The notes under the pieces are model-generated. The model was not told where the DNA came from. It did not search any database and was given only the letters and a program-made list of their open reading frames with translations. Below, one piece after another: positions 3,802 through 47,096 of a stretch of 51,702 bases of DNA (positions are counted from its first letter, which is position 1; each line of letters begins with the position of its first letter). The stretch spans positions 1 to 51,702 of the forward strand of contig CALSCP010001606.1 of the NCBI GenBank assembly GCA_943704425.1. Direction: 5' to 3'. The stretch comes from Ministeria vibrans ATCC 50519 (lineage: Eukaryota; Protista; Filasterea). The position numbers were made by a program, and so were the translations under genes.

Positions 3802-4111
3802 TAATTCAATTTTCCACTACAATCAATAATAAAAAAATTAATAATATTAATTTTAATAATAATAATAAACATACCATTTTATTTTATTAACACAACGAGT
3901 TTCAGAAAACTTAGCGTATTACTTTCAATTTATTATAATTATTCGAAAACTTACAAAATTTATCTTAATGCGTCTCACTCACGTTTTTTTTTGTAAAAAT
4001 AATCGAAAACCAATTCTTTAAAAGGCTCACTTGGTAAATCAGTCAATCATCTTAATGCTTTTGCATTAACACACACACACACACAAAATGGCTTTCAACT
4101 GCACATTTCTC

Positions 4112-4745
4112 TCAAGGAGTGACACGAGACGGGTCACGAGGGAAGAGAGAAGTCTTGCGGATGTTATTGAGCCCCAAGTAGAGCATAACAACACGCTCCA
4201 TGCCGACACCGCCGCCGCCGTGCGGGGGCGCACCGTGCTTGAAAGCATCAACGTACCCCTGGATGGTCGGGATGGCAATGTCGTGCTCCCCTGCGCGCTC
4301 CACAAGGTACTCTGCGTCGTGGACACGCTGTGCGCCCGAAAGGATCTCTTCGCCACGCATAAACAAATCGTACGAGTTGCTGTAGCCCGGCATGTCCGCG
4401 TCAGGCATCGTGTAGAACGGACGAATGGCAAGAGGGAACTTGTCGAGCATGTAGAAGTCGGTGCCGTACTTCTTCTTCACGAGGGTTCCCAGGAACTTCT
4501 CGTTGGCCGTCGTCAAGTCATCAAACTCGCCCATTTCCACTCCAGCCTCACGCAACATTGCAACTGCATCGGGAAACGTCAGGCGCAGACTCGGCTCAAG
4601 AAACTGGAAGGGTTCAGCGGGAAACTGACGCGAGACAGTGTTGATTTCAGTGTCAAACTGGTCGCGAAGACCCTTGAAAATCGACACGAACATCTGATCA
4701 AGCATGTCGAGGACCTACAACAAGTGGTGGAGAGATAGAGTGAGT

Positions 4746-4842
<97 letters not shown>

Positions 4843-6148
4843 AAGAAACAAAGTGATAGAGAGAGAGGAGAAAGAAACAAAGTGATAAGAGAGAGAGAGG
4901 AGAAAGAAACAAAGTGATAGAGAGAAACACAGTGATAGTGAGAAAGAGGGAGAAAGTAACAAAGTGATAGAGAGAGAGAGAAAGTAACACAGTGATAGTG
5001 AGAAAGAGGGAGAAAGAAACAAAGTGATAGAGAGAGAAAAACACAGTGATAGTGAGAAAGAGGGAGAAAGAAACAAAGTGATAGAGAGAGAAAAACACAG
5101 TGATAGTGAGAAAGAGGGAGAAAGTAACAAAGTGATAGAGAGAGAGAAAGAAAGAAAGAGAGATGGGATATTGATTGAGCAAGACGTAATAACACAAAAA
5201 TGACTATGACAGCGATTGAGAGTGAATGCGCGAGTATGTGCAAGTGACTCTTCGCTTACTTCATGATAGTGCTCGGAAATAACCATTTCCATATCAAGAC
5301 CGACAAACTCAGTGAGATGGCGATGGGTATTGCTGTCCTCCGCGCGAAACACTGTGCATCGCCCAAACAAGACAGTGAGTAAGTGGAAAGAAAATCAACC
5401 GAGAGTAAAACTTATATGGAAGTGAAAAGAAAAATCCATTAAAATTGAATCAATTAGAAATGACAAGAATGATACAAAACATTAATATTATTATTGGAAA
5501 TGACGTATGGAAAAAATGAAACTTACCGGGACCCACTTCAAAAACGCGCTCCATATCGCCACAAATGGCCATCTGCTTGTACAGCTGAGGACTCTGCGCC
5601 AGATACGCACTCGCTACACCAACAAAAACGTGATGATGAGATTAGTAGGGGAAACGGGTTGTTGGTGGCTGTGACGACGATGTTACATTTGAAGTAGGAC
5701 ACTTTGAAAACGTTTGCACCGCCTTCGGACGCAGCGGGAATGATTTTCGGGGAATGGATCTCAGTGAAGTTCTGAGAGAGAAGGAAGTTGCGGAAGAACA
5801 TACAGACACCAGATTGGATGCGAAAGATGGCCTACGAGAATGAACATTAGGGTTAGGGTTTTGGGTTGAAGTGTTTCACGAGTTCTTACCTGGCTTGTTG
5901 TTGTTCTGAGGTCAATGATGCGGTTGTCGAGTCGCGTGTCCTGGCCCACCGAAGGAAGACCCTCCTTGGCAAGCTCGTCGGCCGAACGACTGGCATCGTC
6001 GATCTGGAAGGGGAGTGTCGTGGCGGCGCGACTGACACAGTGCAGTTGGCTCACGTGCAGTTCCACAGTGGATTGAGTGCACGATTGGATAGGCGTGTCC
6101 ACTTTCATCACTGTCCCAAGCACATTCACAATGGACTCTTTGGGAAGG

Positions 6149-6189
<41 letters not shown>

Positions 6190-7162
6190 AGAATGTATCG
6201 GAAACACTCAATCAGTGTGATGGGAAGTTTGTACCTTCCGGCAAACTTGACAAAGTGTTTGCTGATTTTGTCGTTGACAAAAGCAAGACCTTGAAGGGTG
6301 AACTGCTGCTGACGGAAGACAAGGAAGCATTGCTTGCCGGTCGAGCGAGATGTGTGGATTCGAACGCGAATCAGAACCTGTTCAATTTTTTGAGACGCAC
6401 AGTGAGTTTGAGTTGACGTGCAAGTCTGCTGTTTTCGTCTGTACCTCTTGACCAACGAGGGACTCGGTCACTTGCTCAACGCGAGTGTACGTGCGGCCAG
6501 GACGATCGCGGCTTTGCATCATGGGAAGCATGCCGTAGAGACCCTCGGAGTAGTCCTGTGGGTGTGACAAGGAACAGTGTCATGACGAATGATGCGATGA
6601 TGAAATGAGAGATGTGCAAAAGGAGAGCTGTGCGGCGGGCGCGGCGGGGCGGGGAGGGGCCTCGCCCAATGGCAGGCAGGCAGCGGGTGCGGGAGGGCGT
6701 GGATGCGTTGGGAATGGCGCGATATTGCGTCAGTGCGGCGTGAGTGAGCATCAATGCGCAAATCCGCCAACAACTCTTCACTGGCGTCCGTTGCAGTGTC
6801 ATTACCGGTCCCATGGCCGCAGCCTCTTCAGCAACCTGCAGAGTAGAGACAAAATAGGAGATCAGGCGGTCTCAGAATGTCGTAATAAGGTTATTTGGAT
6901 TTGTCATGCTGAGTTTCTTTTTTTTTTTTTTTTTTTTTTTTTTGACTTACGCGTTTGGCTTCAGCCGCAGCCTTGAGCGCCGCCTTCTCGCGCTCCTTCT
7001 CGAGCTTCTTCAGAGCCTTCTTGCTCAGGGGAAGACCGTCGTCGCTGAGTTACGAGATTGGAAAACTGATCAGCAGACGAACTTTTCGACTGAGGAGTAT
7101 ACATACCCCAGAACGGGCGCAGGAGCAGCGGTGGTAGCAGTGTTACTGGAGGGTTCCGACAT
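4112..7162 (-). CDS. DARS1: Cytosolic aspartyl-tRNA synthetase (multi-exon)
   Basis: Exons encode [61 protein letters not shown] and [16 protein letters not shown]. Start MSEPSS at 7162. Confidence 0.96.
4750..5150. repeat. Intronic (GA)n microsatellite grading into a ~28-bp minisatellite
   Basis: Pure GA run to ~4838, then about 11 copies of GAGAAAG(A/T)AACA(A/C)AGTGATAG, partly as an alternating ~56-60-bp dimer. Confidence 0.9.
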
Positions 7163-9866: not shown

Positions 9867-10738
9867 ATGATTATCTACAAGGACATCATCTCCGGTGAGA
9901 ACACACCTTATTCTGTCCGTTTGAGACTCATTTCGTTTCCCCCCTCTTTTTTTTTTTTTTTTTTTTTTCGTGTGCGCTCGTTCAGGCGACGAGGTTGGCT
10001 CGGACAGCTTCCCGCACGTGGAGGTCGACGACGTCGTCATTGGTATGGTGCTGTTGGGAAGCGCTTGAGTCTGCCCTGCTTATGTTCCGTCTGGTGTGTG
10101 TGTGTGTGTGTGTGATTTTGTGTAGAGCTGACTGCCAAGAAGATTTCCGTCTCCAACGACATTGACGAGTCTCTGTTGGGCGCCAACGCTTCCGCCGAGG
10201 AGGCCGCCGAGGGAACAGAGTCGGCTGCCCTCACAGACTTTGACGTTGTCATCTCTCATCAGCTCCAGCGAACGTCGTTCGACAAGAAGTCGTACATGGT
10301 AATGCAATAACATGACACAGAGAGGATTTCTGTTCTGATCCTCAACGCGTCGTTGGTTAGGCGTACATCAAGGGCTTCATGAAGACAATCAAGGAGCGTC
10401 TTGAGAAGGAGAACCCCGACCGTGTCAAGGTTTTCACCGAGAAGATGCCGCCGAGTACGGAAATGCCTCTCTAGCATGTGAGTTTCTCACCACTGTCATC
10501 TTTTGCAGTCATCAAGAAGCTCCTGGGCAAGTTTGACGAGCTCGAGTTCTTCACCGGAGCATCGCAAAACTTTGAGGGTCTGGTACTCATCTGCGACTGG
10601 CGCGAGGATGGCGTAAGACACACTCTTTCTACTTGCACATTTCCCCTTTGGGCTTGTTGACTCACATCTCCCGTCTCTGTTTAGGTGACCCCTTACTTCA
10701 TTCTGTTCAAGGATGCCCTTAAGCAGGAGAAGTGCTAG
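9867..10738 (+). CDS. TPT1: Translationally controlled tumour protein (multi-exon)
   Basis: Spliced product MIIYKDIISGDEVGSDSF...LLGANASAEE...FDKKSYMAYIKGFMK...EFFTG...TPYFILFKDALKQEKC, with GT-AG introns. Confidence 0.96.
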
Positions 10739-11366
10739 CTCACTGCCACAAATACACACACTCAACCTAAAGTCACAGAATATCTCGTCCTGTCGAATTG
10801 CGTCTTTCTCTTTCTATTTCTTTTGCATCTCTCTTATTTTTCAGTCATCTACACTCCACCTATCAAAGCGGACCATCTCGAAGCCCTTGATGGTCCGTAC
10901 ACACAATCGAGCTTGTTTTTTATATCAATTTATCCTTGAATAAATTGGAAATGTCTCTTCTCTTTCTTTCTATCTATCCTCAAACCAAACATTCTCGAAA
11001 GGCAAAGCTACCCTGCAAACAATGCAATATTTTATACTACAAACCAAAACAAATGAAACAAAACCAAAACGGCAATAACTCCAACATCGCACCTTACCCT
11101 CAAATCAAAGGAATCTAAATCTCCCTTCTCTCTCTTGTCTTTGCTCTTTCCTAAGTTCTCTTGCCCAGATCACCTCAACATGACAACATCACATATCAGT
11201 GGACAGTGATATCACCTTCGTTTTCTTTCTGATCAACCCCAATCCAACTTGCAAATTCCTTTCCTGTGAGACTTGCGGTCAAAACATAAAAACAAAGATC
11301 TCAGTATAAGATATCTCTGACTCTGAGTATGTAACTTTTTTTCTTGTGCAGAGCGTCTTTCTCTCC

Positions 11367-11442
11367 ATGCAGCGGTCCTCTTTGTACACGCTGGCGACTG
11401 TGCTGGTGGCTCTGTCGCTTCCCTTCGAGGGTATTCAGCACT

Positions 11443-11475
<33 letters not shown>

Positions 11476-14400
11476 GTCTTTTCATCTCACCATTCGGTTG
11501 TGACGTTGCAAACGAACGACATCGAAGGGCCGCACAGGGGCCGAATGGCCGCTCTTGGGGCCTTGACTGGTGGGAATGCACCGGTGTGCTGCAGTCCCGC
11601 CCGTCGATTTGAACGGGGGTCCCTTGGGGCTCGGTGTGCGGTGGGTCTGAAGGACGGTCGTTGGGCCACCAGTGGGCTCTCTCTCTCTCTGTCTCTCTCT
11701 CTCTCTCTCTCTTGCCGTGTCGCGCCTTGCACGCTTTCTTTGCCGCTTGTGAACTTGGAATATGCTGCAGCGACATGTTTGGCGTGCGGGGTGCTGCTTT
11801 GTTTGACGTGGGAGACTGTGCAAAGAGGGATTTCGCACGAAAAGAGCGATGAAATGTTGAACCGTCCTCGCTGTTTTATCTTTTCCTCACTGTAGCGTCC
11901 ACCACGCTGGTCTGCATCAACGACGGGGTGAAAGTGTTCAACTCGTCGTGTGTGGCGCACGCTGGCGCGCCGTATCTGCACGGGTCTTCGCTGGCAGAGT
12001 GGGACAGTCGCGTTGTGCTTGACGCATCGACGGGCAAGGCCTTCCTGGCGGGAACGACCGACGGCGCCTGGGCCGGCATGCCTGCATCAAGTGGGAACAT
12101 TGTCGTCCTTGGACTCCTGCCCGTAAGACCTCTTTCTTCTTTTTTGTCGTTTTTTTTTTTTTTTTTTTTTTTGGGTTGCAGAGCATTCCTGAAATAGCCA
12201 CTGATTTTTTGGTATGATTGTTTTTTTTTTTGGTTTTTTTTTTGTTGCAGGCGTCGAGTCCAAGCGCTGAGACGTACACAGTAGCACCTGTGCATTTTGT
12301 GACTGCCTCGGACTCCGATAGCAACCTGGACCAGGTGCTGAGCTTGGCCATTTCGCCATCGACCGGCGAGACAAGCGCAAAATTGTACATTGCGGGACAC
12401 ACCACGTCGTCCTTGGGCGGTGCCCAGATTGGCAGCGAGGATTGCTTTGTGGTGGTTGTTGACGCCGATACTGGTGTGCAGGATTCTGCTTCACACTGGG
12501 GCACGCCACATCACGACGAAGTCGATGCCGTGGTGCGTGATGAAGTGCGCGACCAGGTCTATGCCGTGGGTCATACGCGCGGCGAGATTAGTCAAGGCGA
12601 GTTCATGACCGGTCCCTCAGGCACGTCCAATCCCTCTGTGGACTCCACAGTCTTTGTGATGGCTCTCTCCCAACCAACAAAGGTCCTCACCATTGGCACG
12701 CAACGCCGCGAGTTTGCAACGTCGGCCGTCCTCAATGCCGACGAGGGTCACCTCTACATTGCGGGGAGCACTCAAAACAGCCTCTACAATGCCAACCAGG
12801 GCGCCACAGACGCTTTCATTGCACGCGTCAACGTTTCCTCCTCTCCCATCTCCCTCCTCGACGGCTATCAATGGGGTGCTCTCGCCAGCGAGTCAGCGTA
12901 AGCACGAAATTTTTTATTATCAACGTGACACTAATGACTGTCTTACGTTTTTTATTATAATATTAATTTTTTTTGGTTTTCTTTCTTAGTGTTGCTCTGG
13001 CGATCGATGTGGAAAACAACGCACTATTTGCCATTACGGAGGATTCTTCGGCAGGCACTCACTCACTTGTTCGATTCACTCTCGACCTTGGCTCTCCAGT
13101 CTTCACAGTGCAATTTGGCCTCTCGTAAGAGTCAAAACACAAAACCAAACAAAAAGAGACCCCTTTTTACTCCGCACACGAAATTATTTTTCAGAGGAAG
13201 CACTATTGCTTCTATGGGTCTTGACCTGTCACTGGGCTCCGTGTACGCGGTGGGATCCATTGAATCGGATGCACTTGTCGTGCGACTCGATGCCGAAACG
13301 GGTGCAGAGCTTTCTCTGACTCGAACCTCTCCTGGCACTTCTGCCGAGTACACCAGCATTGCATGTGACTCTTCACAACACTCATGTTTTCTCGGAGGTA
13401 ACGAGTGCATCACATAAAGAAAGTCTCTAACCCCCCCAAAATGCAATGATTAATAATAATAATTATTATTATTATTATTATTAATTTTGGTTGTTGTGCC
13501 GTTATTCATTAATATTATTGCTTTTTACTACATTTTTTAGGTTCAGCAAACAACGACTTTCTTGTCGAGACACTGTGCACCATTGTGTCGACGGAGGCGT
13601 GCCAGTGCAAGGCAGGATCGTGGGGAGAGGCGTGCGAGTCACAGTTGTCGTCGGACTGCGACTCATCGCCGTGTGCCAATGGCGGCAAATGCTCCAACCT
13701 CGCCGAGGGCCACTCGTGTGCTTGCGCAACGGGCTGGATCGGCGACACATGCGAAACTGTCGACGTGGATGAGTGTGTCTCGTCGCCCTGCCAAAATGGT
13801 GGCTGGTGCGAACATGATCTCAACTCGTATCGCTGCGTGTGTGTGAGTGGCTGGACTGGCGACCGGTGTCAACAAAACGCCATTGAATGCCTTTCGTTTC
13901 CATGTCAGTATGGCGGCGTCTGTACCGACCTGACGGACGGGTACGTGTGCTGGTGCGATCCCGGCACAACTGGTACCAACTGCGAGACAAACTTGGACGA
14001 GTGCGTCTCGTCGCCTTGCCACAACGATGCCACGTGCGTCGATGGCGTCAACGAGTTCTCGTGCACCTGCGTGAGTGGCTGGAGCGGCGACTTATGTCAG
14101 ACCGAAGTCGACGAGTGTGCATCGACACCGTGTCGCAACGGCGGCACTTGCCTTGAGCAGTTTGATGGCTTTACCTGTCAATGCACTCTTGGTTTCAGCG
14201 ATGCCATATGCAGCACCGACGTCGACTTGTGTCTGTCCAATCCTTGCGTCGAGGCCAACACCGAGGAGTGCATGGACACTGCTGGCGACGACTTCAACTG
14301 TATCTGCCACTTGGGCTCGTCTGGCACGCTCTGTGAGACACGTGAGCTTGCCTGTACCTCTAATCCCTGCCACCATGACGGTACGTGCAGCGAGAGCACC

Positions 14401-17097
14401 ACGGGACCCGTCGCTTTCGAGTGTGCCTGTAAAGACCTCTACATCGGCGCCACCTGCAGTGAGACGAAACCTCTGGATTCGATTGCCTCCAGTCTGGGTG
14501 CGTCGTCTTTGTCGGATCGTGAGGGCATCTTTGCTGGTCTCGCCGACGTCAACATCACATCGAACAACCTCGGAGCGCTCGCCGACATCACCCGTAATGT
14601 CACCGACTCGAAGGAGTCCGTGACCGTGAGCGAGGCTGCGTCGACGATCAAATTCATCGCGCGTGTCAGCCAACTTGACCTTAGCGCCGTCTCCGAAAAC
14701 GAGGTTTCCATCGTCGTGGATGTCGTCAGCAATCTGCTGGGTGCAACGGCAACAGCCAAGGCGGTGCTTGAGTCGGCAGACGACTCGCCTGCTCTGCTGC
14801 TCGAGCGTCTCTCCGCCAAAATCCTCGGCGCAAGCCCCTCCTGTAGCACCCCCTCCTTCTCGTCTGCCTCCGCGGACAACACCGTCTCCACGTCCGCCTT
14901 TATGACGACAGGATCCGCCATCAAGAACAGTGTGATTGAGCGCACCGCCAAGCGCATTGTCCAGTTTGCGCCGTCGGAGAGCTTCGCGGATCTCGTAGAG
15001 GCACAAATTGGCGCGAGCTCGTGCACCCGTGTTGTGATCAACGCCATGGCTGCCGATGCATTTTTCCAGGGCGACCCGACAGTGCGAACGGATGCCACGG
15101 CGAGCGCCGGCGCCCACAACGAAATTGCCAGCAGCATCATCACAGTCACGTTTGCCGACCTGGCTCTGAGTAACCCTCTCGAAGGGGGCGCCTCAGTGCG
15201 ACTGCGCATGGAAACCTCGGGCGCCGCCCTCAATGCCACCGACGATCGCTTCCAGTGTGTTGCCTGGAACTTTACAACCTCCATGTGGAGCAGCGAAGGC
15301 TGCGCGATGGTGTCGCGTAACGCTCAGCAGGGTACAGTCGAGTGCGAATGCACACACCTCACCAACTTTGCCGTGCTCTTTGACGTGAATGGCAATGCTG
15401 AGCAGTCGACCGCGCTCAGTGTCCTCTCGTATGTGGGTGTCGCACTTGCACTTATCGGAAGCTGCAGTGTGTGCATTGTCTATTTACTTTTGCGCAAGTT
15501 GCGTACCCGACCGCTCATCATCATCATGATGTGCTGCGCCACCATCTTCATGACAGAGCTCATGTTTCTTATTGTCTCGGTTGCGTCCTCGTCGGCCACG
15601 ACCGCCGGCTGCTTTACCCTTGGGCTCATCATGCACTACGCCATGCTTGCCCAGTTCACAGCGCTTCTCTGTGTCGGCATTGGATTCTACCGTCTGCTGC
15701 ACTCGGCGCGTCAGTTGACCACGCCCGTCTTGCGCACAATGGCCCTTGCCATTGTGCTGGCGCCCTTGGTGGTCATCAGCATTTTCCTGGTGGTGCTAGC
15801 CATCCTGGACGACACGACGGTCGCTTCGGCCTATGTCAACAGTGCCGATACAAACACTCAGTTTTGCTTCGTGTCCACTACGCCACGTCTTGCCGCAGTT
15901 GTGATGGGCCCTGTCGCACTGGTGCTCCTCATCAACATGATTCTCTGCGTGCGCATTGTGCTCTCGCTGCGTCACCGCCAACAACAGCTGCCGGCCAAGT
16001 TACGCGAGTCTCACTGGTCCATTGCACTGTCGCTTGCCATGCTTCTGGGCATCACGTGGGTCTTTGCTGTGTTTGTTGTGGCACACGCATCCGTGGTGTT
16101 TCAGTATCTGTTTGTCATTGCAAATGGCGCGTTGGGCATCTTCCTCTTTGTCAACTATGTGCTCATAGCCAAGGTGCGTGTGGGCATGCGCGAGCTGATC
16201 ACGTCGCTCAAGGAGCGATCGCGTCGCACGGCAAGCACCTCGTTGGCGTCGTCGCCAGGCTCAGGCAAGAAGAGCGGCAGTGGGCGGACGAAAAAGAGCA
16301 AGACGATGCAATCTGTGGCACACACCGCTGTGAACCTTTCAAATAGCAGCATGTCCAGCAGCGACTCGAGTGGCGACAAGAAGAGCCAGTTGACGCCGCG
16401 GTGGTGGCACATTTTCCATCCGGGCAGCAGGTACTTCCGCTCGCGATCACGCCACTCTGCCATGGTGCACACCAACAGCACGGGAAGTAGCAAGTCGCAG
16501 AACGACCTGTCGGTGTCGGTCTGGCGTCTTTCCGAGACACCCCACACGTCGGAGATTCTGATGGAACGCGCGCCAATGAGCGAGACACTGAGTCCCCTCA
16601 TGAGCCACAGCATGAGTCCAACCATGAGTCCGAGCCATCGTCACGGTGGACGGCGCTCACTGTTGGCGAATGCCCCCGCAGTCGTCAACACCTCGAGCGC
16701 ATCGATGCCGTCGGTTAACTCGTTGCGGTCACCGTCGTCGGCGACCAATCCGCTCTCGCCCTCGTCGACGCACCGACTTTTTGTCGATGCTCACTGCCAC
16801 CCGACACCCCCATCGTCGGTACCCACCGCACGACGCGTGAGCTGCGACCACGACGCCACCGGCTATGTGCTCGACCGTACCCAGGTGTGGATCGAGGACA
16901 TCGACGACACCACCCCCGACAACGAGGTTCCCTTGTCCGCTATCGCCTTCCCCACCGATGGCCATAGCACCGCCAAGCGTCCCAGCGCCGCTATCCTCTC
17001 ACGCTTCGGCAAGATGTCGGCCACGGCTGCACTAGAGCGTGACATGATCGATCTCGAGCAAGTTGTCACCGACCAAATGATCAGCACGGCAGTCTAA
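11367..17097 (+). CDS. Adhesion GPCR: signal peptide, beta-propeller-like repeats, ~7-8 EGF repeats, GAIN/GPS, 7TM, S-rich tail
   Basis: MQRSSLYTLATVLVALSL signal. Exons with LYIAGHT / VYAVGHT / LYIAGST repeats. DECVSSPCQNGG EGFs. GPS CVAWN...WSSEGC...CECTHL|TNFAVLF. Seven hydrophobic segments including LLGITWVFA. Joining of the 5' exons is inferred from splice signals. Confidence 0.9.
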
Positions 17098-23676: not shown

Positions 23677-25893
23677 TTACACAATCGTCTCGGAAAACTC
23701 GATGATACGACTCTCGCCGGACGGCGAATGGGTGTGGATGTTTGCAGTGATGCTATGAAGCGACTGGACAGCGCTGAAGACGGTATTGAAAAAGTGCTGC
23801 GTGCCAATCTTGTCGCGGAGGCCAGTGTGGGTGAGCACATCGCGCACGGGACCGCGCACGCCGGCGAACAGCACGCGAATCTGCTGCTCTTCAAGCTCGT
23901 CGCAAAGAGACGAGACGACGTCCACGGCACTGGTGTCAAGGCCGCTAAGGGAGTCACAGTCGAGGACAAGGGCATCGACCGGCTGGCTGGCGTTCTGTGC
24001 CACCACCTTGCGCACTTTCTCCTTGAACGTGGCGGCGTTTGCAAAAAAGAGCGGCGCGTCCCAGCGCATCACAACGACATTTGCTGTGACGATAGCCTCG
24101 GGGTAGCGACGCACGTTGCGAAACACAGTGGTACCTGGCAGCCGCCCGACAATGGCGTAGTGCGGACGAGAGATGCGGGCGAGCACAAGCACCAGTGAGA
24201 CGCCAATGCTAATGCCAATGCCAAGCTCAATCCCAACAAAGACAGTCAAGCAAAAGGTGAGCACCCACAGAAAGCACTCGCGACGACTCACGCGCCACAA
24301 GTGAAGCACCTCACCCATGCGGACCATGGGAAAGACGGCCACCATGATGATGGCGGCGAGGACCGCCTTGGGCAGATAAAAGAAGGCCGAGGTGAGTGCG
24401 TACAACGTGACGAGCACGACAAGACTGCTGAGGAGCGACGCCAGTGGTGTCTTGGCGCCCGCTTGGGCATTTACCGCCGTCCGCGAGAATCCTCCTGTCA
24501 TTGGATAGCACGAGAAGAAGGAGCCTATCAGGTTGGCTGCGCCGAGTGCGACGAGCTCTTGGCTCGCGTCCAGCTCGTAGTTGTTCTCGGCTGCAAAGCG
24601 CTTTGCGACTGCCATGGATTCCATAAAGCCCACAAGGGAGATGATGGTAGCCGTGAGGAGGAGGGAGCCAATGGCTCTGAGCGACGGTACGCTTGGGGGT
24701 GCGAGCCCCGGCGGTACGGCACCCACAACGGCCACTCCACGCGACTTGGTGGCCGTCGTCTCGGTCACGAGGATGTCGGCCGTGCCGCTTGTGGCGTTGA
24801 TTGACAGCACATAGAAGGGCGTCGGTGCGACCACCGTGCCGTTTGCAAGCACAGGCACCGTCTGCGTGACGTTTGTGGCGACGTACGTCGTTTCGGCAGC
24901 CAGACCGCCCAAACTGACTGCGAGGGTACCGGCGACGACAACAATGAGCGTCGCCGGCACAATCTTGATGTAGCGATGGAAGAACCCCCAACGCTTTGGG
25001 GCGTACTTGTAGAAGAGCAGCAGAGCACAGGCGAGAAGCGTGATGAGACATGTGACCCAGTAGGCATCGCCAATGTTTTTGAACAGCTCGTAGATCATGA
25101 CGTGCAACTGTTTGCTTCGTTTCACCGAGATCCCTAGTGCGTCCTTGAGTTGCGACAGGCCAATGAGCAGCGCAGCGGCCGCTGTGAATGCGGAGAGCAC
25201 GGGATGCGCCATGAACTCGACGATAAAGCCAAGCTTGAGCACACCCAATAGCAGCTGGAGCACACCAACGGCCAATGCCAGGGCGACCGCAGCCGCATTG
25301 TACTCGCTCGTGCCTTCGACGTACGCACCACTCAGAGCACTCCGTGTCAACAGTGAGACCATTGCCACGGGAGCCACTGAGAGCTGGCCACTCGTGCCGA
25401 GGATTGCATAGACGAGCGTGCCAAAAAAGGCCGAGTACAGGCCATACTGGGCAGGGAGGCCGGCCAGAAGGGCATACCTGTCCCAACGGAGAAAAGACGC
25501 ATTAATTATTATTATTATTATTATTATTATTATAATAATAATACTATTATATATTTTGGTGTGAGTTTTTGTTTATTCTTACGCCATTCCTTGAGGGATG
25601 AGCATCACGCCCGTTGTGATACCGGCATTGAGGTCGCCGCCCAGCTTGGCTCGCCAGGTGGTCTTTGCATCGCCGTAGGAGGGAATCCAGCGCGTCGACG
25701 GCACAAAGGTGTTGGCGAGCTTTCTGATCGAAGGGCGCTCTCCGCGGCGTGCTTGCTTCAGCTTGTCCCTCACCTTGCCTGTAAGATGTCTGTCGCGAAT
25801 GGGGTCGGCTGGGAAAGCCTGGTCGCCGCTGACACGCTCAACTCCGGCAACCAACGATTGCATCTCAATGCTGCTCAGACTGTCGTCCGCCAT
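23677..25893 (-). CDS. SulP/SLC26 anion (sulfate-type) transporter with STAS domain, 2 exons
   Basis: GDLNAGITTGVMLIPQGMA|YALLAGLPAQYGLYS, GPVAMVSLL, SQELVALGAAN, GGFSRTAVN, GAKTPLA, DAPLFFAN and STAS LVLDCDSLSGLDTSA. Confidence 0.95.
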
Positions 25894-26016
25894 CACCGAT
25901 CACTGCTTCACCGTAAGAGTAGCAAGAGAACGTCGCCCTAGAAGCACTAGAAAAGTATGATGCCCGATTGTCCAAAGGAGAGCCGCACTGTCGGGCAAAT
26001 GATGAGAGCGGGATGT

Positions 26017-26038
26017 CCGATCTCGGCGGATCGATCGG
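26017..26038. promoter_or_regulatory. Candidate shared cis-element, copy 1 (SulP/YeeE divergent promoter)
   Basis: CCGATCTCGgcgGATCGatCGG; 17 of 22 positions identical to 29302-29323. Confidence 0.5.
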
Positions 26039-26246
26039 GGAAATTGCCGGAGTCACTTCGGAGTTTTTTCCGTCCAAAGTATTGCACCAGATCAAATCAT
26101 CAAAGATTTCAAACTTCAAAGTCACTTTATTCACACGTGTTAGTGCGAACTATACCTCACCAACACCCTTTGACCTTCGTCACCATCTGGCAGTAGGCAA
26201 CGCGCGCCGACCTCACCCCCAAGTTGTGAAGTGTGACTTTTTCGAT

Positions 26247-27460
26247 ATGGATTTCACTCGTGCGATTGTGTCAACGCTGAGCGGCGTTCTGTTCGGCATC
26301 GCGATAGAAAAGGGCCGGGTACACGTGCCAGAGCTGATTATTGGTACTGTGCCGTTGCGTTTGACTGTAGAAGTGTACTCATTTGTGGATTTTGTCTTTT
26401 TATCGACAGCGCAAATGAAAATGGAGCATTTTGTCATGATGAAGATGTTTCTTTCTGCCGTTGCTTCAGGCAGCGCTGCGCTTGCCCTCCTGTCTACGGT
26501 GAGCCCGCAGCGGTTCAACGTCGCCAAGGAAACGTATCGCTCGTGTTTGTGGCGGAGCGTTGGTTCGGTCGGGGTTGGGGGAGCACTGCTGGGTGTCGGC
26601 ATGACGGTGGCGGGAGCATGTCCGGGCACTGTGCTCGTGCAGTTTGGCGCAGGTCTGCCGTCGACTGTGCTGGTGCTTGTCGGCGGCTATGCCGGAGCAC
26701 TTGCCTTTGCCGTTGTGGAGCCGTGGCTGCGGGATCATGTGTTTGCACCGCCGCCGAATGTCAAGGGGAGATTTGTGGACGAGCACATCACGACCATGTC
26801 AGGGTCGACCATGGCCGTGGCCCTGAGCGTTGCCATGGCTGGATGTGTTTTTATGCTTGAGCAGTTTGTACCTTGGCAAGCGGACATTGGGATGCCATTG
26901 GATATGTCGGCTGGGTTCCCGTCGCTCTCGGCACGTGCATGGCCGCCCTACGTTGCTGGTGCAATCATTGGCCTGCTACAGATTCCCGTTGTTCTCTTCC
27001 TCGGCGACACGATTGGCAGTGCCTCGAGTTACGCAACGACAGTATCAAACGTGTGCTACGCCTGTGTGCCAAGTGCCGTTTCACACAACAAGCATCTGAT
27101 GGGCGCCAAGGACGGCTGGGCCAACTGGTGGCAGGTGCTGTATGCGGCGGGCGCCGTCTTGGGCGGCCACCTGTCCGCCTCAGCCAGCCAACAGGCGGGC
27201 GCTATGGTAGCTGAAGCTACTGGTGTGACGCCTGTGCGCTCTGTTCTCGGCGGCTTCATCATCCTCTTTGGCTCGCGACTCGCCGGTGGCTGTACCAGTG
27301 GTAAGAATTACAGTAGTTGATAGGATAGATTCATGTACTCACACACAATTAATACGTTATAGGACATGGAATCAGTGGAATGGGGTTGATGAGCACTCTC
27401 TCGTTTGTGGCTGTGGCTGCCATGTTTGCCGGTGGAATGGGCACTGCTCTGTTGCTGTGA
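26247..27460 (+). CDS. YeeE/YedE-family sulfur-compound (thiosulfate-type) transporter, 3 exons
   Basis: GVLFGIAIEKGRV, MMKMFLSA, GGALLGVGMTVAGACPGT, GSRLAGGCTSG|HGISG. Introns ~26343-26409 and 27301-27362. Confidence 0.92.
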
Positions 27461-27684
27461 GCAATAAGTTTGATAATAATTCTTTGTAAAAGATCAAAAA
27501 TTTAATATAATCAATGAATAATATAAAAATAATTATTTTAATTATAATAATGACGTTATTATTAAAAATCATATTGTATAATTATTATAGTCTTGTTTTG
27601 ACGTTGGGTACAGCTCTTGATTCTCTATTTAATTTTCCTTGATTATTGAAAAAAAAATTATTAGTGCATTAATTGAGGGGGGAG

Positions 27685-29205
27685 TCAGTGATTGGCCAGG
27701 AGAGGTCGGAGAGTGAGGTCGTAGCCGCCGACGACGTCCTTGGCGCGGAGACCGGAGGCGCGAAGGATGGAGACGGCGATGGAAGAGCGGTAGCCTTCGC
27801 TGCAGTAGGCAATGTAGGAGAGGGAATGATCGAGGGAGCGTGCGAGGTCTGCCAGACTGGTCAGTGGGGCGTTTGTGGCGTTGGGAACGCGACCCTTTTT
27901 GGGGCAGTTAAACTCGGAGGCAGTGCGGACGTCGAGGAAGCGCACGGTGGGGTCGTGGAAGAGTGCGTCGAGGCGTGAGCGGCTGTCGGTATCGTTGGTG
28001 AGGCGCAGGCGCTCCGAAGCCTGCAGCTGGCCCTGTTCGGGGCCTAGCTGAGTGCCCCATTCAGCCATGGTGGCGTCTAGGAGGGCGCACACGTTCTCGT
28101 AGCCGACGCGGCAGAGACGCTCTATGCTCTCCGTCTGCTTGTCCGTCGGCGTGACCAGGAAGACGGTCGCGTGGACATTGATGATTCCGCCCACCCAAAT
28201 GGCAAAGTTGCCATCGCCCGGCTCCAGCTTGACACCGCCGAGTTGCCCGACAGGGAAGTTGAGGGCGCCGTGGACGTGTCCCTTATTGAAATCCTCGGCA
28301 GAGCGAGTGTCGATGATGACAACCTCGCTGTCGCCCGCATGACGACGAAAGAGATCGAGGAAGTGTGCGGGTGAGACGCGCGGGACTTTGTCGACGACGG
28401 TCGCGACGTGGCCCGCACCCTCGACATTCTTGGTGACGCACTGCGCAAAGTACTGCGGCGCTTCGGGAAGACCGTCCAGGGAGAAGCTCACAAAGGCATC
28501 CTCGTCTTGGAGGAACGCCAGCGCGGGGTTGCTAGCCGTCTCGCGTGCAATGGTCGAGAACAGCTCATTGCTGAGGTTTTTGCCGCACGGAGAACCCGCA
28601 CCGTGCGCTGGGTGGACAAACGTGTCGCCAGGGAGCTCGTTGACAAGGCGGTTGAGACTGGCAAAGAGCTGGCGAGCGAGAAAGGCCGGCTCGACGCCGC
28701 GCGCTCCGAGAAGGTCGGGGCGCCCGACGCTGCCGACAAAGAGCGTGTCGCCCGTGAAGGCGCGCAGGGGCCGTCCGGCGAAGGCTCTTCCGGCGGCGGT
28801 GGCGGTGGCGGAGTCTCCTTGGCGGTCCACGAGCACGTAGGTGGTGCAGCCGAGCGTGTGTCCCGGCGTCGCCATCGCCTGGACTGCAAAGCGTTTGCTC
28901 AGGACGAAGGTGTCTCCGTCGCACACGGGAAACTGGGGATGCGACGCGCCTGCCTCCTTGCTAATCATAATGGGGGCTCCCGTGCGCTTGTGGAGCTCAA
29001 GATGGCCCGCGACAAAGTCAGCGTGGACGTGTGTGAGGAGGATGCCTTTGAGCTTGAGGTTGTGCTTCTGCAGATCGTCAATGTAGATGTCCACGTCGCG
29101 CCGCGGATCCACCACGACGGCGACGCCGTCGTGCGCAATGAGGTACGACGCCTGTGCAATGCATTGCAGGTAGTATGTCTCGAAGAGAACGTCGCTGACA
29201 ACCAT
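27685..29205 (-). CDS. MBL-fold persulfide dioxygenase fused to two rhodanese domains (CstB-like), intronless
   Basis: VDPRRD, THVHADFVAGH, TPGHT, TGDTLFVGSVGRPDL and PAHGAGSPCGK. Middle rhodanese (IDTR...GHVHGA) lacks the active-loop Cys; C-terminal rhodanese has YCSEGYRS. Confidence 0.93.
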   Translation of the reverse strand: MVVSDVLFETYYLQCIAQASYLIAHDGVAVVVDPRRDVDIYIDDLQKHNLKLKGILLTHVHADFVAGHLELHKRTGAPIMISKEAGASHPQFPVCDGDTFVLSKRFAVQAMATPGHTLGCTTYVLVDRQGDSATATAAGRAFAGRPLRAFTGDTLFVGSVGRPDLLGARGVEPAFLARQLFASLNRLVNELPGDTFVHPAHGAGSPCGKNLSNELFSTIARETASNPALAFLQDEDAFVSFSLDGLPEAPQYFAQCVTKNVEGAGHVATVVDKVPRVSPAHFLDLFRRHAGDSEVVIIDTRSAEDFNKGHVHGALNFPVGQLGGVKLEPGDGNFAIWVGGIINVHATVFLVTPTDKQTESIERLCRVGYENVCALLDATMAEWGTQLGPEQGQLQASERLRLTNDTDSRSRLDALFHDPTVRFLDVRTASEFNCPKKGRVPNATNAPLTSLADLARSLDHSLSYIAYCSEGYRSSIAVSILRASGLRAKDVVGGYDLTLRPLLANH

Positions 29206-29301
29206 TGTTTAAGAAGACCGCGGGGTTATTGAGAGGCGATCAACAACAATTAAGAGTGATTCAAATGTATTATAAAATTTATGGATCTATAGAAAATAGT
29301 C

Positions 29302-29323
29302 CCGATCTCGCGCGATCGCACGG
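29302..29323. promoter_or_regulatory. Candidate shared cis-element, copy 2 (PDO/MPST divergent promoter)
   Basis: CCGATCTCGcgcGATCGcaCGG, immediately followed by another CGATCTC. Confidence 0.5.
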
Positions 29324-29412
29324 CGATCTCTCGACTCTCATCTCCTCTGCGATATTATTCACTTATTTTTGTCTTTTAAACACATACATCACTAGCATCA
29401 ACCGTAACTAGT

Positions 29413-30469
29413 ATGGTGAGTGCCGGGCCTGTGACTCCCCTCGTCGATGCTGAGTGGGTACACGCGCGTCTTCAAAACGCTGCAATTCGAGTGCGAACAA
29501 TAAGAGCGAGAAAGTAAAGAGTATGGAACTCATTCACATTGATATGTCATGTGTAGATTGTGCAGGCGACCTGGGCCGAGTCCATTGGTGGGCGAGAGGT
29601 GTTTCCCGTCGAGCGAATTCCCCGAGCCGGAAAATATGACATTGACTCGGAGGCGGACCCGCACAGCGACCTTGTGACACGTCCTCACATGCTGCCTTCT
29701 CCATCACGATTTGCTGCGTCCTTACGGCGTCTGGGCATTCGCAAAGGTAAGAATCTGACGATGAAGTATGATTTGTGCGACATCGGAGAAATATACAATA
29801 GTTATTATTATTATTAATTATGTAATCCCTAATCTATCCTCTATCTTTTTCCCTTTCGTAGATGATCACGTCGTCATCTACGACTCAGACGGCCTTCATG
29901 GATCGCCTCGTCTCTGGTGGACATTCTTCGTGCTGGGCTTTACTCGAGTGAGTGTCTTGGATGGTGGCCTGCCCGCTTGGCGGAAAGTGTTTCCATGTGA
30001 GACGGGCGCACCCTCGGAGTGCGAGCCGGTGGCCATCGACGACCCCTTCGCGTTCCAGCCTGCTCTCGATGTATCCTTGTTGTGCAGCCTCGCTGATGTG
30101 GAGCGGGTGGCCAGTGGAGACGAGTCGTGTCCCCTCGTGCTCTTCGACGCACGCTCACCCGGTCGATTTTACGGGCGAGACCCTGAGCCACGGCCTGTGC
30201 CCAGCGGTCACGTACCCAACGCCATCTCGCTGCCGTATTCTCAATGTCTTGATGCTTCGCGGACGCGAATGGCCGACACCGACACACTGCGCAAGGTTCT
30301 CACGCGACTTGAGTCGGAGGAGCGAACAGCTGTGTTTATGTGTGGCTCGGGTTTTACCGCTGCCATCTGTGTGTTTGCGGCGTACCTCGTCGGATTGAAA
30401 ACACCCCTCTTATACGATGGCAGTTGGATGGAGTGGGTGCACAGCGGAGGGGTTGTTGTGGCGGAGTAG
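29413..30469 (+). CDS. MPST: 3-mercaptopyruvate/thiosulfate sulfurtransferase (tandem rhodanese), 3 exons
   Basis: LVDAEW, PHMLPS, VVIYD, PRLWWTF, VSVLDGGLPAW, DARSPGRFYG, GHVPNA, active loop CGSGFTA (Cys codon at 30341), LYDGSWMEW. Confidence 0.93.
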
Positions 30470-30744
30470 AGAAAAGTAACATAATGTAATAATATTTAAT
30501 ATCGTGAGACGATTGATCAACGTGTGATCAACTAATTTGTTTGATCCAAGCTGCGTATATATGTACTTTTTGGCGTTTCCGCAGCATATCTAGTTTGTCT
30601 ACTCTTGATAAATCACCTCGGCTTCACTCAAAAGTCAAAATCACATGAAAATTTGAGCATTTCAATTTTGCGTCGCGATCAATGATCACTGATCAGTTTT
30701 CCAGACACTCACTTTTCCAGTTTTCCTTCTTTACTTCATTCTTC

Positions 30745-31082: not shown

Positions 31083-32454
31083 GCTGCCCACTCTGAGCGC
31101 ACAGGTGCAGTCTCTCCAATCGCAAGTCGACCAGTGCACGTGTTCGTGTTCGTCGTCACCGTGCCAGCTCGGCGCAACGTGCGTCGATGCCTACGACGGG
31201 TTCACGTGCGTATGTCCCGCGGGCTTCGGAGGCAGCGACTGTGCCTCCGACATGGACGAGTGTGCGTCGTCGCCCTGCTCCAATGGTGGCACCTGCGTCG
31301 ACATGGTCGATGGCTTTGTCTGTTCGTGTCCGTTGGACTACACCGGCATCATGTGTAGCATTGATGTGAATGAGTGTTCCTCGTTTCCCTGCCAGAATGG
31401 CGGAACCTGTGCGAACCTCGTCGATGGCTTTGAGTGCTCGTGTGTGTTGGGCTTCACTGGCACACTATGCGATCAAGAAGACGAATGCGCGTCGTCGCCA
31501 TGCCAGAATGGTGCCACTTGCACGGACATGATGGGCTTCTACACATGCGCCTGTCCAGTCGGACTCGGAGGCTTTGTCTGCGAGAAAAACATCGCCGAGT
31601 GTTCGTCCTGTCCCTGTCAAAATGGCGGCACATGCGTCGACGATATTGGATTCTTTACCTGCACGTGTGCGTCGGGCTTCTCCGACACCCTGTGTTCCAC
31701 GAACATTGACGAGTGTGCGTCGTCACCGTGCCAGAACAGCGGAACGTGCGTCGACGAGATGGATGGCTTCTCGTGCCTCTGTCAGCATGGTTGGCTCGGA
31801 TCAGACTGTTCCATTGACCCGTGCGACTCGAGCCCCTGTCATTACTCCACCTCGTGTATTCCAGGCTACTACTTGGGGACGCCCGGTCTGCTTACCGTGC
31901 CCTGGTGTGTCAATTGCGGCCCATTTCCGCTCACGCTCAATGTCGAGGTGGGTCAGGAAGTCCAGTGGTCCATTGCAAATGCCACCACCGCGCACACCGT
32001 TGTCATACCCTCTCTCAACGTCACCAGTCCAACTCCAATGAGCAGCGACTTTGTCTATTCTTTCTCCTCGCCAGGCTCCTATCCATTTCACTGCACCTAC
32101 CACGCCACAAGCATGTACGGCACTGTCGTCGTCACTGCCCCGCCTGACTTTGTCTGTGAGTGTGACGATGGACTTGCCGGTGTCTTTTGCGAGACGGACG
32201 TTGACCTGTGCATGTCCAGCCCGTGCCAGTACGGCGGGACGTGCGTCGACGGCGTTGGCAATGCTTGGCCACCATACTCGTGCTCCTGTGCTCCCGGCTA
32301 CACCGGGTCAAACTGTGAGACGTTTCTCGGTTGCCACTCGCCGCCGCTGTGCCAGAACGGCGGAACGTGCTATCCGAGCCAAAATACCTACATGTGCGAC
32401 TGTGTTGAGGGATATACCGGTGCGACGTGCGACATTAGCTTTGTCACTGTTTGA
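30745..32454 (+). CDS. Secreted multi-EGF protein with an internal cupredoxin (type-1 copper) domain, 2 exons
   Basis: Signal MKLNVLLVFLTTVCHVATPVWG. Intron 30982-31083. Short coiled coil, nine EGF repeats, and cupredoxin VEVGQEVQW...AHTV...PGSYPFHCTYHATSMYGTVVV. Confidence 0.88.
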
Positions 32455-45200: not shown

Positions 45201-47096
45201 TCCAGGTCCGCCTCCGCTGGCGACGTGTTCTCAATGAAGAAGCCCGAAATTTTACAGACGAACCGGTGATCCACCAGCACTTTGGTGGAGCGCAAGTTGC
45301 GATGCGCAATCTCGTTGTTGTGCAGAAACATCATGCCGCGTGCGGCGTCCATTGCCATGCACACCTAAGAAGAAGGAGAGCAGAAATAAAAATTATTATT
45401 ATTATTATTAATTTTTCGAAATATTTTGTATAATAGAATAGTATAGTATAATAATCTTTTTCGTTTTCATACCTTGAAGTCAAGATCAAGTTTGATTTGA
45501 GACTTGAGGCGAAGTACGTCGTATAGGGATCCCTTGGCGCAATACTCGACAACCATGTAGCGAGGTTGGATAGTGACGCCGTAAAACTCGACGAGGTTGG
45601 GATGGCGCAGGTCCTTGAGACGCACAAAGGACTCGGCAATGGCACGGTAGGCTGTTGAGGAGACTTCGCCCTCCATGACACCCAGGTTGCCGGCGCGCTG
45701 TGAGCCGAACCAGAGCGAGCGACGACGCCCGCCACCATGTCCATCGATAGAGGACGAGGGATTGTTCATGATTGAGCCGCCGCGTTGCAAACTGGTTGCG
45801 GTGCTGTTCTGACGCGGGTTCGACACATGATCAGAGAGGTTGAGGCGGATTCCGTAAGCGCGACAATGGTCGTAAGTGGCGAGGAAGGTCTCGCCGACGT
45901 CGTCAATCTCCTCGACATCCTCGAGGTCGTCGTAGTCGATTTGCCAGTGCTTGTAGCGCTCGATGGCGAGGAGGTGCTTTTTGCGATGGTGCTTGCAGTA
46001 GAAGTAGATGGCGGCGGCAGCAAGCAGCAGACCAATGATGACGACGGGCACAGCAATGGCGGCAGTGGAGCCACTTGAGGCTTGCACGAGGATGGGAGGA
46101 AGAGGAAGCGACGTGGCGAGGGCAGCCAGAGGATCAATACTCTCGTGGTTGTCATCTTGGTGGTCGCTTGTACTGACGCGAGTGTGTTCACTCCAGAGCG
46201 CCTGCATGGTGTGTGCGGCCGACATGAGGGCGACGCGGGTGGGTGTGCGCGTGTCGCGAACATTCTCATATGCTTGCCGGAGTGTGTCACGGGCGAGTGA
46301 CGACACACGCGAGACGGTGAGAGGCAAGGGTATCGGAGAAGGGTCGCGTGAGCTGAGAAGCGCATGAAAGAGAGAAGGTGGAAGAAGGGACCAGGCACGC
46401 GCGTTGGCAGGAACACCGCCGTACTTGGGGAGGAGCAACTGACCCGTTGTAAGTTGGGCGAGCCACTCGACAAAGGTGCGCGCTGCAATGTCGGTTGACG
46501 ACATGGACGAGGCAGCGCCGCGAAGGGCTACGGCAAGCAGTGGCAACCGTGCGACCGGACGACTGAAGCGCGTAGCGTTGTGAAGCGACACGAGACGAGT
46601 GGAAGCAAGAGCGGGGCACGAGGAGGGGCCTGTCGCCAGTGCGAGGGCTCGTGAGGCTGTGGTGAGGAGCGCCGGGAGTTTTCCATTGCAGAATGCATCG
46701 GTGGCCGCTGCGGCGTCCAGATGAGTGGAAGAGAAAAATTGAGAGAGAGTGAGGAGAAGAGCGTCGAGGGTTCCTTGGGCAACAAGCGTGTCGACAAGGG
46801 TGGGATCGTCGTTGACAAGCTGCGACGGCCAACGATCCAGCGAGCCACCCAGAAGTGTTGAAAGAATGTCCCACACCATTAAAGGGTCGTCCAGATCACT
46901 GCAAGTGCGGAGAGTGAGTAAAAAGGATGATTGAGGGAGAGTGTGTGTGCGAGAGATCCTTCATACGTTTGCGCTTGATTCAGTGTGTCCATCACCGAGG
47001 TCGACGGTACCACCCGCCTGCTGTTGACGGCAAGCAGGGGAACGTCTGTGACCACAGTCAGAGAGACGCTTTCAGCAGGCAACACAGCGAAATCCT

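Follow-up and report, generated by a model that had tools for sequence, protein, structure and literature searches.

In the Staphylococcus aureus cst operon (CstR-CstA-CstB-SQR-TauE), the three-domain persulfide dioxygenase (PDO) CstB is encoded next to a sulfurtransferase and a sulfur-oxyanion transporter. It was reported that CstB S-sulfonates its own C201 and then passes the group to persulfidated C408, with thiosulfate as the sole product and no release of sulfite (PMC12934615, a 2026 preprint). Bacterial loci of the blh/bigR and yrk types also link a PDO-rhodanese protein to YeeE. In animals, the mitochondrial SQOR-ETHE1-TST pathway employs a non-heme-iron dioxygenase of the metallo-β-lactamase (MBL) fold, which oxidises persulfide, and a rhodanese, which forms thiosulfate, and the genes of this pathway are dispersed in the genome. 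Here we describe four neighbouring sulfur-related genes at positions 23677-30469 of a nuclear contig of the protist Ministeria vibrans ATCC 50519; "the window" is the whole stretch of 51,702 nt that was analysed. The genes form two divergent pairs, SulP(-)/YeeE(+) and PDO(-)/MPST(+), with a convergent spacer of 224 bp between the pairs:

23677..25896, minus strand: SulP/SLC26-type anion transporter with a C-terminal STAS domain; exon 1 25896-25583, intron 25582-25478, exon 2 25477-23677; 704 aa
25897..26246, no strand assigned: divergent promoter region SulP/YeeE; 350 bp between start codons; contains the motif copy 26017-26041
26247..27460, plus strand: YeeE/YedE (Sulf_transp), fused full-length membrane protein; exons 26247-26343, 26410-27300 and 27363-27460; 361 aa
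27685..29205, minus strand: CstB-type PDO, intronless; 506 aa; MBL PDO domain, Cys-less rhodanese-like domain and catalytic rhodanese domain
29206..29412, no strand assigned: divergent promoter region PDO/MPST; 207 bp between start codons; contains the second motif copy 29302-29326
29413..30469, plus strand: MPST-type two-domain rhodanese; exons 29413-29490, 29557-29746 and 29862-30469; 291 aa

The M. vibrans locus resembles the cst operon in encoding the same three-domain dioxygenase with the same catalytic residues, and in placing a sulfurtransferase and sulfur-oxyanion transporters beside it. It differs in being nuclear and monocistronic, with divergent promoters and with intron-bearing neighbours of the dioxygenase gene. 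The locus contains no CstR-type repressor and no SQR, and neither was found elsewhere in the genome; YeeE and SulP take the place of TauE as transporters, and the sulfurtransferase is a eukaryotic MPST and not a CstA fusion. Relative to the SQOR-ETHE1-TST pathway, M. vibrans has one fused enzyme that belongs to another PDO class and is apparently cytosolic, and neither SQR nor ETHE1 was found.

The gene models were read from the sequence and then checked against contigs of public sequencing runs. The original prediction, made from the letters of the window, had named the same four sulfur families in this order and orientation, as two head-to-head pairs, and the gene models and Pfam matches agree with it. 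The open reading frame (ORF) of SulP (23677-25377, minus strand) matches Sulfate_transp (3e-81) and STAS (1e-21), that of YeeE (25968-27320, plus strand) matches Sulf_transp (PF04143, 1.3e-30), that of PDO (27685-29205, minus strand) matches Lactamase_B and two stretches of Rhodanese, and that of MPST (29768-30469, plus strand) two stretches of Rhodanese. SulP, YeeE and MPST were searched through their largest exon only, and the trees and identities given below for these three rest on partial proteins.

Four introns were seen as GT..AG joints in RNA-like contigs of runs X1, X5 and X6. Run X1 splices YeeE intron 1 (26344-26409) and the MPST introns 29491-29556 and 29747-29861, both MPST introns being removed within one contig, while both YeeE introns, 27301-27362 among them, are removed in X5 and X6; the window and the DNA run X8 are collinear. 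The SulP intron (25478-25582) is not spanned by any contig, and the X1 contigs on both exons halt on either side of it; its removal restores the motif IPQGMAYALLAG, which is unbroken in 118 of 120 homologues. This intron consists largely of a (TAA/TTA)n microsatellite (25496-25553), at which reads are cut. Because introns are spliced and the locus is flanked by Forkhead, adhesion G-protein-coupled receptor (GPCR), RCC1 and EGF genes, it is nuclear and eukaryotic, and the nuclear origin argued for earlier from the introns is thereby borne out.

The assembly comprises 29.7 Mb in 2860 contigs and contains two Sulf_transp loci, two SulP genes, about six rhodanese loci and one PDO. By simple arithmetic, with about 10,000 genes assumed, the expected number of four-gene runs with one member of each family is about 5e-10, and it is about 6e-6 even if 50 genes are counted as sulfur genes. 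Since the families are low-copy in a genome of 29.7 Mb, chance adjacency is negligible; expansion of the families to the point where adjacency is expected by chance, which the original prediction had named as a reason to abandon its reading, did not hold, with one to six loci each. The spacers flanking the cluster measure 274 and 212 bp. The lack of gaps within the cluster, noted earlier, is real but not special, because spacers of 200-350 bp are normal in this compact genome. The paralogous YeeE on contig C1908 was considered as a possible second sulfur cluster and rejected: it adjoins a CLC channel and a phosphoesterase, without sulfur genes. We conclude that the cluster is a genuine, non-random, nuclear group of four independently transcribed genes, and its full four-gene arrangement is so far unique to the Ministeria vibrans genome.

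The PDO aligns to the solved Alicyclobacillus beta-lactamase/rhodanese protein 3tp9 over residues 9-496 (1.5e-50) and matches S. aureus CstB (3r2u, 2.2e-33). It has the three-domain architecture of these proteins, and its middle rhodanese-like domain has no Cys at the active-loop position. The metal ligands H59, H61, D63, H116, D153 and H201 are invariant in all 18 eukaryote-clade sequences aligned, and so are the Cys-Gly loop C207-G208 (GAGSPCGK) and the rhodanese C468 with R427 and R473, which align to HCQSGIRSS of 3r2u. Gln18 (AQASYLI) aligns to Gln13 of CstB (SQASYLI), at a position where canonical PDOs have Thr. The counterparts in CstB are C201-G202, C408, R370, R413 and Gln13 (PMC12934615). 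Since the metal ligands, the Gln, the Cys-Gly loop, the rhodanese Cys and the Arg residues are all kept, the protein carries every sequence-level hallmark of CstB, and the earlier description of it as a CstB-like dioxygenase was correct. By its sequence, the enzyme most likely turns persulfides into thiosulfate. The M. vibrans protein also has a lineage-specific, Ala/Thr/Gly-rich insertion of about 12 residues (residues ~136-151, 28750-28800) between the HT and FTGD motifs, which is missing from the other 17 eukaryote-clade sequences.

In the PDO tree, the M. vibrans sequence belongs to a clade of 20 sequences (support 100) set apart from the bacterial sequences, most of which come from Acidobacteriota and similar groups. 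The members are M. vibrans, an MMETSP transcript, Choanoeca flexa, five sponge genera and unnamed transcripts. As judged from these sequences, PDOs of the CstB class form a eukaryote-only clade with all the catalytic hallmarks. The literature searched contains no description of a eukaryotic CstB-type clade or of this cluster, and the CstB class is treated there as bacterial. An ENA contig of 729 kb (ctg49563, L006) carries two intronless PDO-Rhod-Rhod copies of the eukaryote clade, at 1-1322 and 10001-11530, about 9 kb apart, which are interleaved with repeated NHL/DUF5128 genes and represent a tandemly duplicated block.

The best match of MPST exon 3 is human MPST (3olh/4jgt, 2e-29). Its loop CGSGFTA aligns to the human CGSGVTA, and the substrate arginines in DAR and GRF align to those in DSR and GRF. 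The MPST type is told from TST/rhodanese by a CG(S/T)GVT instead of a CRKGVT loop and by the two Arg that bind the carboxylate of 3-mercaptopyruvate. The identity to the two-domain rhodanese of a bacterial operon that contains all four families (L024, described below) is only 25%. By sequence, the sulfurtransferase is thus of the human-MPST, eukaryotic type.

The fused, full-length YeeE family occurs in echinoderms, molluscs, a brachiopod, a sponge, choanoflagellates, chytrids, ascomycetes, algae and a euglenid, with identities of 45% or less. A profile of this eukaryotic family matches S. thermophila YeeE (StYeeE, 6leo) over residues 2-324 (3.4e-14), while a direct phmmer search of YeeE against solved structures gave no match, so that only the family profile reached StYeeE. 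The protein has the Sulf_transp fold with two pseudo-symmetric halves, to which bacterial relatives match as separate halves, and the equivalents of the relay cysteines C91 (GACPG) and C293 (GGCTSGHG) are invariant in the eukaryotic family. The best solved relative of SulP is AtSULTR4;1 (7lhv, 7.5e-104), others being prestin, SLC26A6 and pendrin. A Sulfate_transp membrane domain is followed by STAS, and a scan of the M. vibrans genome places profile positions 22-380 at 24256-25476. In a tree, the M. vibrans SulP and those of Salpingoeca infusionum and two Hartaetosiga species make up one clade (support 100) amid bacterial "SLC26" proteins. The SulP family carries many anions, and sulfate, thiosulfate, sulfite, bicarbonate or chloride may be considered as candidate substrates of this member. 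The gene families are therefore not new to eukaryotes: PDO, YeeE and SulP have choanoflagellate relatives, and PDO and YeeE also have relatives in sponges or other animals.

Run X1 behaves as RNA, and separate contigs in it cover all four genes, those at 27648-29230 spanning PDO. No RNA contig spans two genes and the contigs end between genes, so a polycistronic transcript, which would be expected of an operon, was not seen. In X1, the word depth of the YeeE contigs (26137-27492) is about 600-2100 compared to 16-60 for SulP, PDO and MPST (the rest of 24500-30490), i.e., YeeE is about 30 times deeper than its three neighbours, although contig depth is a poor measure of expression. In X5 and X6, YeeE is almost alone among the four genes in being assembled. 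Equal co-expression of the four genes is unlikely. The description of the cluster as operon-like, given in the original prediction, holds for the adjacency of the genes and fails for their transcription, given the separate RNA contigs for each gene and the much greater depth of YeeE.

A 25-nt stretch, with 19 of 25 positions matching, is common to the two divergent promoters; its copies at 26017-26041 and 29302-29326 both lie on the plus strand and sit between RNA contig ends (25962/26137 and 29230/29384). Its 17-nt core CCGATCTCGNNNGATCG (26017-26033) has two exact matches genome-wide, one in each divergent promoter of the cluster. In Markov-shuffled promoters, a 19/25 match arose in one of 150 trials and a 14/17 match in 13 of 150. 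A relaxed scan with up to two mismatches gave 113 matches compared to 40 in the control, none of them near other YeeE or SulP genes, and no regulon could be defined. The shared motif may tie the two divergent pairs together.

SQR, absent from the window as the original prediction had pointed out, was not found elsewhere in the genome either: a Pyr_redox_2 search of the fragmented assembly gave candidates of other types only, and a search with the SQR-like protein of L024 as query gave no match, which does not prove its absence. The Pyr_redox_2 candidates were rejected as SQR because, judged by their N-terminal motifs, they look like lipoamide-dehydrogenase/glutathione-reductase, AIF, NDH-2, dihydropyrimidine-dehydrogenase and SelD-associated types. 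In the same fragmented assembly, no second PDO and no ETHE1-type gene was found, the PDO domain matching only itself, and the other Lactamase_B matches, considered as ETHE1, look like glyoxalase II and CPSF. With no second PDO, ETHE1 or SQR found, the CstB-type enzyme appears to be the only persulfide dioxygenase of M. vibrans, and MPST is a plausible source of persulfide. The genome also carries a sulfite-oxidase-type molybdoenzyme, ATP sulfurylase and an NIR_SIR-type reductase. A multi-exon gene on contig C171 (~4100-6750, plus strand; L175) combines an N-terminus resembling coenzyme A (CoA)-disulfide reductase (motif VVGGVAGGASCAARLRRL) with a rhodanese domain at the C-terminus, the strongest match to rhodanese in the genome. 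This architecture is like that of bacterial CoA-persulfide reductases, and by sequence the gene, which is unlinked to the cluster, encodes a second bacterial-style persulfide enzyme.

The neighbours of PDO were examined in 160 bacterial or metagenomic PDO-Rhod-Rhod loci. YeeE halves lie within 10 kb of PDO in 46 of these loci and within 60 bp in 32; SulP is found in five and a two-domain rhodanese in eight. The bacterial operons L024 and L135 have, like the blh/bigR-type and yrk-type loci, PDO-Rhod linked to YeeE, and L024 adds SulP/STAS and a two-domain rhodanese. On this marine contig, the genes run in one direction in the order Crp, SulP, thioredoxin, YeeE half, porin, YeeE half, Tll0287, PDO-Rhod-Rhod, rhodanese, an SQR-like gene, a sulfite-dehydrogenase-like (SorA) gene, a haem protein and a two-domain rhodanese. 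Since this single bacterial operon holds all four families together, the eukaryotic cluster reproduces the content of a bacterial operon, and the parallel with bacterial sulfide/persulfide loci drawn in the original prediction is confirmed by L024 and by the 32 loci in which YeeE halves abut PDO. There are also differences. Bacterial YeeE is made as two halves of ~140-205 aa encoded co-directionally with PDO, whereas the M. vibrans YeeE is fused and its gene is convergent with that of PDO. The SQR-like gene, sulfite dehydrogenase, thioredoxin and Crp regulator of L024 have no counterpart in the M. vibrans cluster, and sequence identity between the two loci is only 25-40%.

Partial linkage was also found in eukaryotes. 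In Amphimedon queenslandica, a SulP+STAS gene is head-to-head with the orthologous PDO, and in Halichondria panicea the SulP gene is immediately upstream of PDO. These demosponge PDOs belong to the same eukaryote clade as the M. vibrans enzyme (41-44% identity) and adjoin a SulP+STAS gene, but the linkage involves two genes only, with no YeeE or MPST nearby, and the SulP genes have many exons. The statement in the original prediction that the animal genes are not clustered does not, therefore, wholly hold. PDO has no sulfur neighbours in Corticium and Dysidea, and YeeE is not linked to sulfur genes in S. rosetta and Corticium. On the metagenomic contig P0015, from the PDO subclade nearest to M. 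vibrans, a fused 410-aa Sulf_transp gene lies two genes from PDO. The search for synteny that had been proposed thus yielded partial linkage, in sponges and on P0015, and not the full four-gene block. Pairs of the four families became or stayed neighbours several times. In the brachiopod Lingula anatina (L010), YeeE (10001-16391) is followed on the same strand, 8.5 kb downstream, by TauE of the sulfite-exporter family (24869-26391), possibly another sulfur transporter pairing in an animal.

With somewhat better than even confidence, we read the M. vibrans cluster as a cytosolic and membrane module for the disposal of sulfane sulfur, in which sulfur would pass from MPST to the CstB-type PDO and its products to YeeE and SulP. 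MPST, which has no presequence, would load persulfide from 3-mercaptopyruvate or relay persulfide sulfur. PDO would take persulfide sulfur on the loop C207 and the rhodanese C468 and, with Fe(II) and O2, release thiosulfate and no free sulfite. YeeE, a homologue of thiosulfate channels, would together with SulP/STAS move thiosulfate and related oxyanions across the membrane. The PDO, MPST and YeeE proteins begin directly at their domains, with no N-terminal extension, and PDO is apparently cytosolic because it has no presequence. Genes with different origins would have been brought or held together within the eukaryotic lineage, the cluster converging on the content of a bacterial sulfide-oxidation operon. 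The identities of the genes, their catalytic residues, their splicing, transcription and low copy number, and the relatives with their linkage are shown directly; in this scheme, it is the substrates, the direction of flow, the cellular location and the co-regulation that we infer.

Several observations weigh against the disposal module. The contig depths suggest that YeeE RNA is far more abundant than that of the three neighbours, including SulP, with which YeeE shares its promoter. The significance of the promoter motif is modest (p about 0.01 for the 25 nt and about 0.09 for the 17 nt), and the motif is suggestive only, because the pattern was defined from its own two copies. None of the other eukaryotes examined shows all four genes arranged in this way. 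In exon-wise comparisons, the many-exon SulPs of sponges match the M. vibrans SulP, its paralogue and a bacterial SulP equally weakly, and orthology of the sponge and M. vibrans SulPs could not be shown. The third relay Cys (C22 of StYeeE) is missing from YeeE, being replaced by His in M. vibrans and by Tyr, Phe or similar residues in other eukaryotes, and a PF01206 search of the fragmented assembly found no TusA/YeeD partner, whose absence is thereby not proven. In bacterial YeeE, the third cysteine contacts the partner YeeD (PMC11073785). Lacking both this Cys and a detected TusA/YeeD partner, the M. vibrans YeeE may differ from bacterial TsuA in its mode of transport.

The alternative that survives best, which we regard as unlikely and yet far from negligible, is scavenging. 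In it, YeeE, perhaps with SulP, would import thiosulfate or sulfate, a rhodanese (MPST or PDO's own) would split thiosulfate into sulfite and persulfide, PDO would oxidise the persulfide, and the products would enter sulfite reduction to cysteine. The ATP sulfurylase and NIR_SIR-type reductase encoded in the genome suit such a route, and the great depth of the YeeE contigs is in keeping with a nutrient transporter that is expressed constitutively. Yeast assimilates thiosulfate with SulP-family permeases and rhodaneses, including the MPST orthologue Tum1. Bacterial YeeE is itself a thiosulfate importer (PMC11073785), and a Burkholderia PDO-rhodanese fusion, in the passage of PMC9163753 that cites it, works from thiosulfate towards sulfite. 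However, the M. vibrans PDO has the Cys-Gly loop and Gln specific to CstB, an enzyme for which thiosulfate is the sole product and sulfite is not set free, and neither the YeeD/TusA partner nor the third cysteine of YeeE, both needed in bacterial uptake, was found.

We consider it improbable that the locus is the decayed remnant of one ancient bacterial SulP-YeeE-PDO operon that an early holozoan or opisthokont ancestor received in one block, with pieces of the linkage surviving by lineage and MPST joining later. These families lie next to one another in bacterial operons such as L024 and L135, PDO and SulP have their nearest non-eukaryotic relatives among bacteria, and the linkages SulP-PDO in demosponges and YeeE-PDO on P0015 look like such pieces. 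Yet the fused YeeE reaches fungi, algae and a euglenid, far beyond Holozoa, while the PDO clade looks much narrower, which argues that YeeE and PDO are of different ages. Moreover, sponge SulPs are no closer to the M. vibrans SulP than to the paralogue or a bacterial SulP, MPST is of the eukaryotic type, and the genes diverge in orientation and have promoters of their own. That SulP, YeeE and PDO arrived long ago as one block is therefore not favoured, and transfer of the whole block from a single donor, on which the original prediction had looked to phylogeny for a decision, finds no support, MPST being eukaryotic. There is, in our estimate, little chance that a SulP-YeeE-CstB block from a sulfide-oxidising bacterium was kept linked for more than half a billion years, M. 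vibrans holding the most complete copy with MPST recruited to it, demosponges keeping SulP-PDO and another protist YeeE-PDO. If true, the ancient linked block would be a rare operon-derived metabolic cluster, maintained by selection, common to protists and animals and provided with a dedicated shared promoter element.

It is very improbable that four sulfur-related genes are simply neighbours, without functional meaning, in a gene-dense genome. Short intergenic spacers are found throughout this genome, the complete arrangement has no match among the other eukaryotes examined, and apparent transcript levels are unequal, all of which would fit such an explanation; but with one to six loci per family in 29.7 Mb far fewer than 1e-5 such runs are expected, bacteria carry the same families in operons, and two-family linkages recur in sponges and on a metagenomic contig. 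On sequence grounds, we exclude that a bacterial operon was transferred recently, since PDO, SulP and YeeE all have a long history in eukaryotes and MPST belongs to the eukaryotic type.

One further feature lies within the cluster, in the convergent spacer:

27586..27631 (core 27598-27625), no strand assigned: copy of a short dispersed repeat in the 3' spacer YeeE/PDO, outside sulfur function

Its consensus is close to TTGACATTGAGTACAGCTCT(C/T)GATTCTC, and at least 81 copies with up to three mismatches occur genome-wide on both strands, compared to none in the reversed control. Depth rises about 24-fold at 27586-27631, and loose contig ends are present there in all runs. The repeat may be a miniature mobile element, or it may serve as a signal at 3' ends. 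The neighbours of the cluster in the window include a GT10 fucosyltransferase, EGF arrays, an adhesion GPCR with a GPS motif, and Forkhead and RCC1 genes. Among them are a Forkhead-domain protein (1477-3801, plus strand), the EGF-rich adhesion GPCR (GPS and 7tm_2; 13585-17097, plus strand), an EGF-repeat protein (31105-32454, plus strand) with a weak, below-cut-off match to Cupredoxin_1 (4.4e-5, residues 275-343) and a fragment resembling tyrosine or serine/threonine kinases (45467-46879, minus strand); hamartin is also encoded in the window. Together with the best matches in choanoflagellates and sponges, these genes suggest a protist of the Holozoa.

In eukaryotic metabolic gene clusters, such as the fungal DAL and GAL clusters and those of plant specialised metabolism, non-homologous genes of a pathway are adjacent, have their own promoters and in some cases share bidirectional ones. 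The M. vibrans cluster differs from these in belonging to another group of organisms, in handling inorganic sulfur, and in having a content like that of a bacterial operon without any sign of recent transfer. To our knowledge, gene clusters at the level of a pathway are well known in bacteria, fungi and plants and rarely documented in protists or animal relatives. The finding exceeds ordinary annotation but is less unusual than it was made out to be at first: none of the genes is foreign to eukaryotes, and the unit is not an operon. In M. vibrans, the CstB-type enzyme seems to replace ETHE1 and SQR, which suggests that marine protists and early-branching animals remove persulfide by a cytosolic route not described so far. 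The M. vibrans cluster is also a tractable case for understanding why unrelated genes of one pathway become neighbours.

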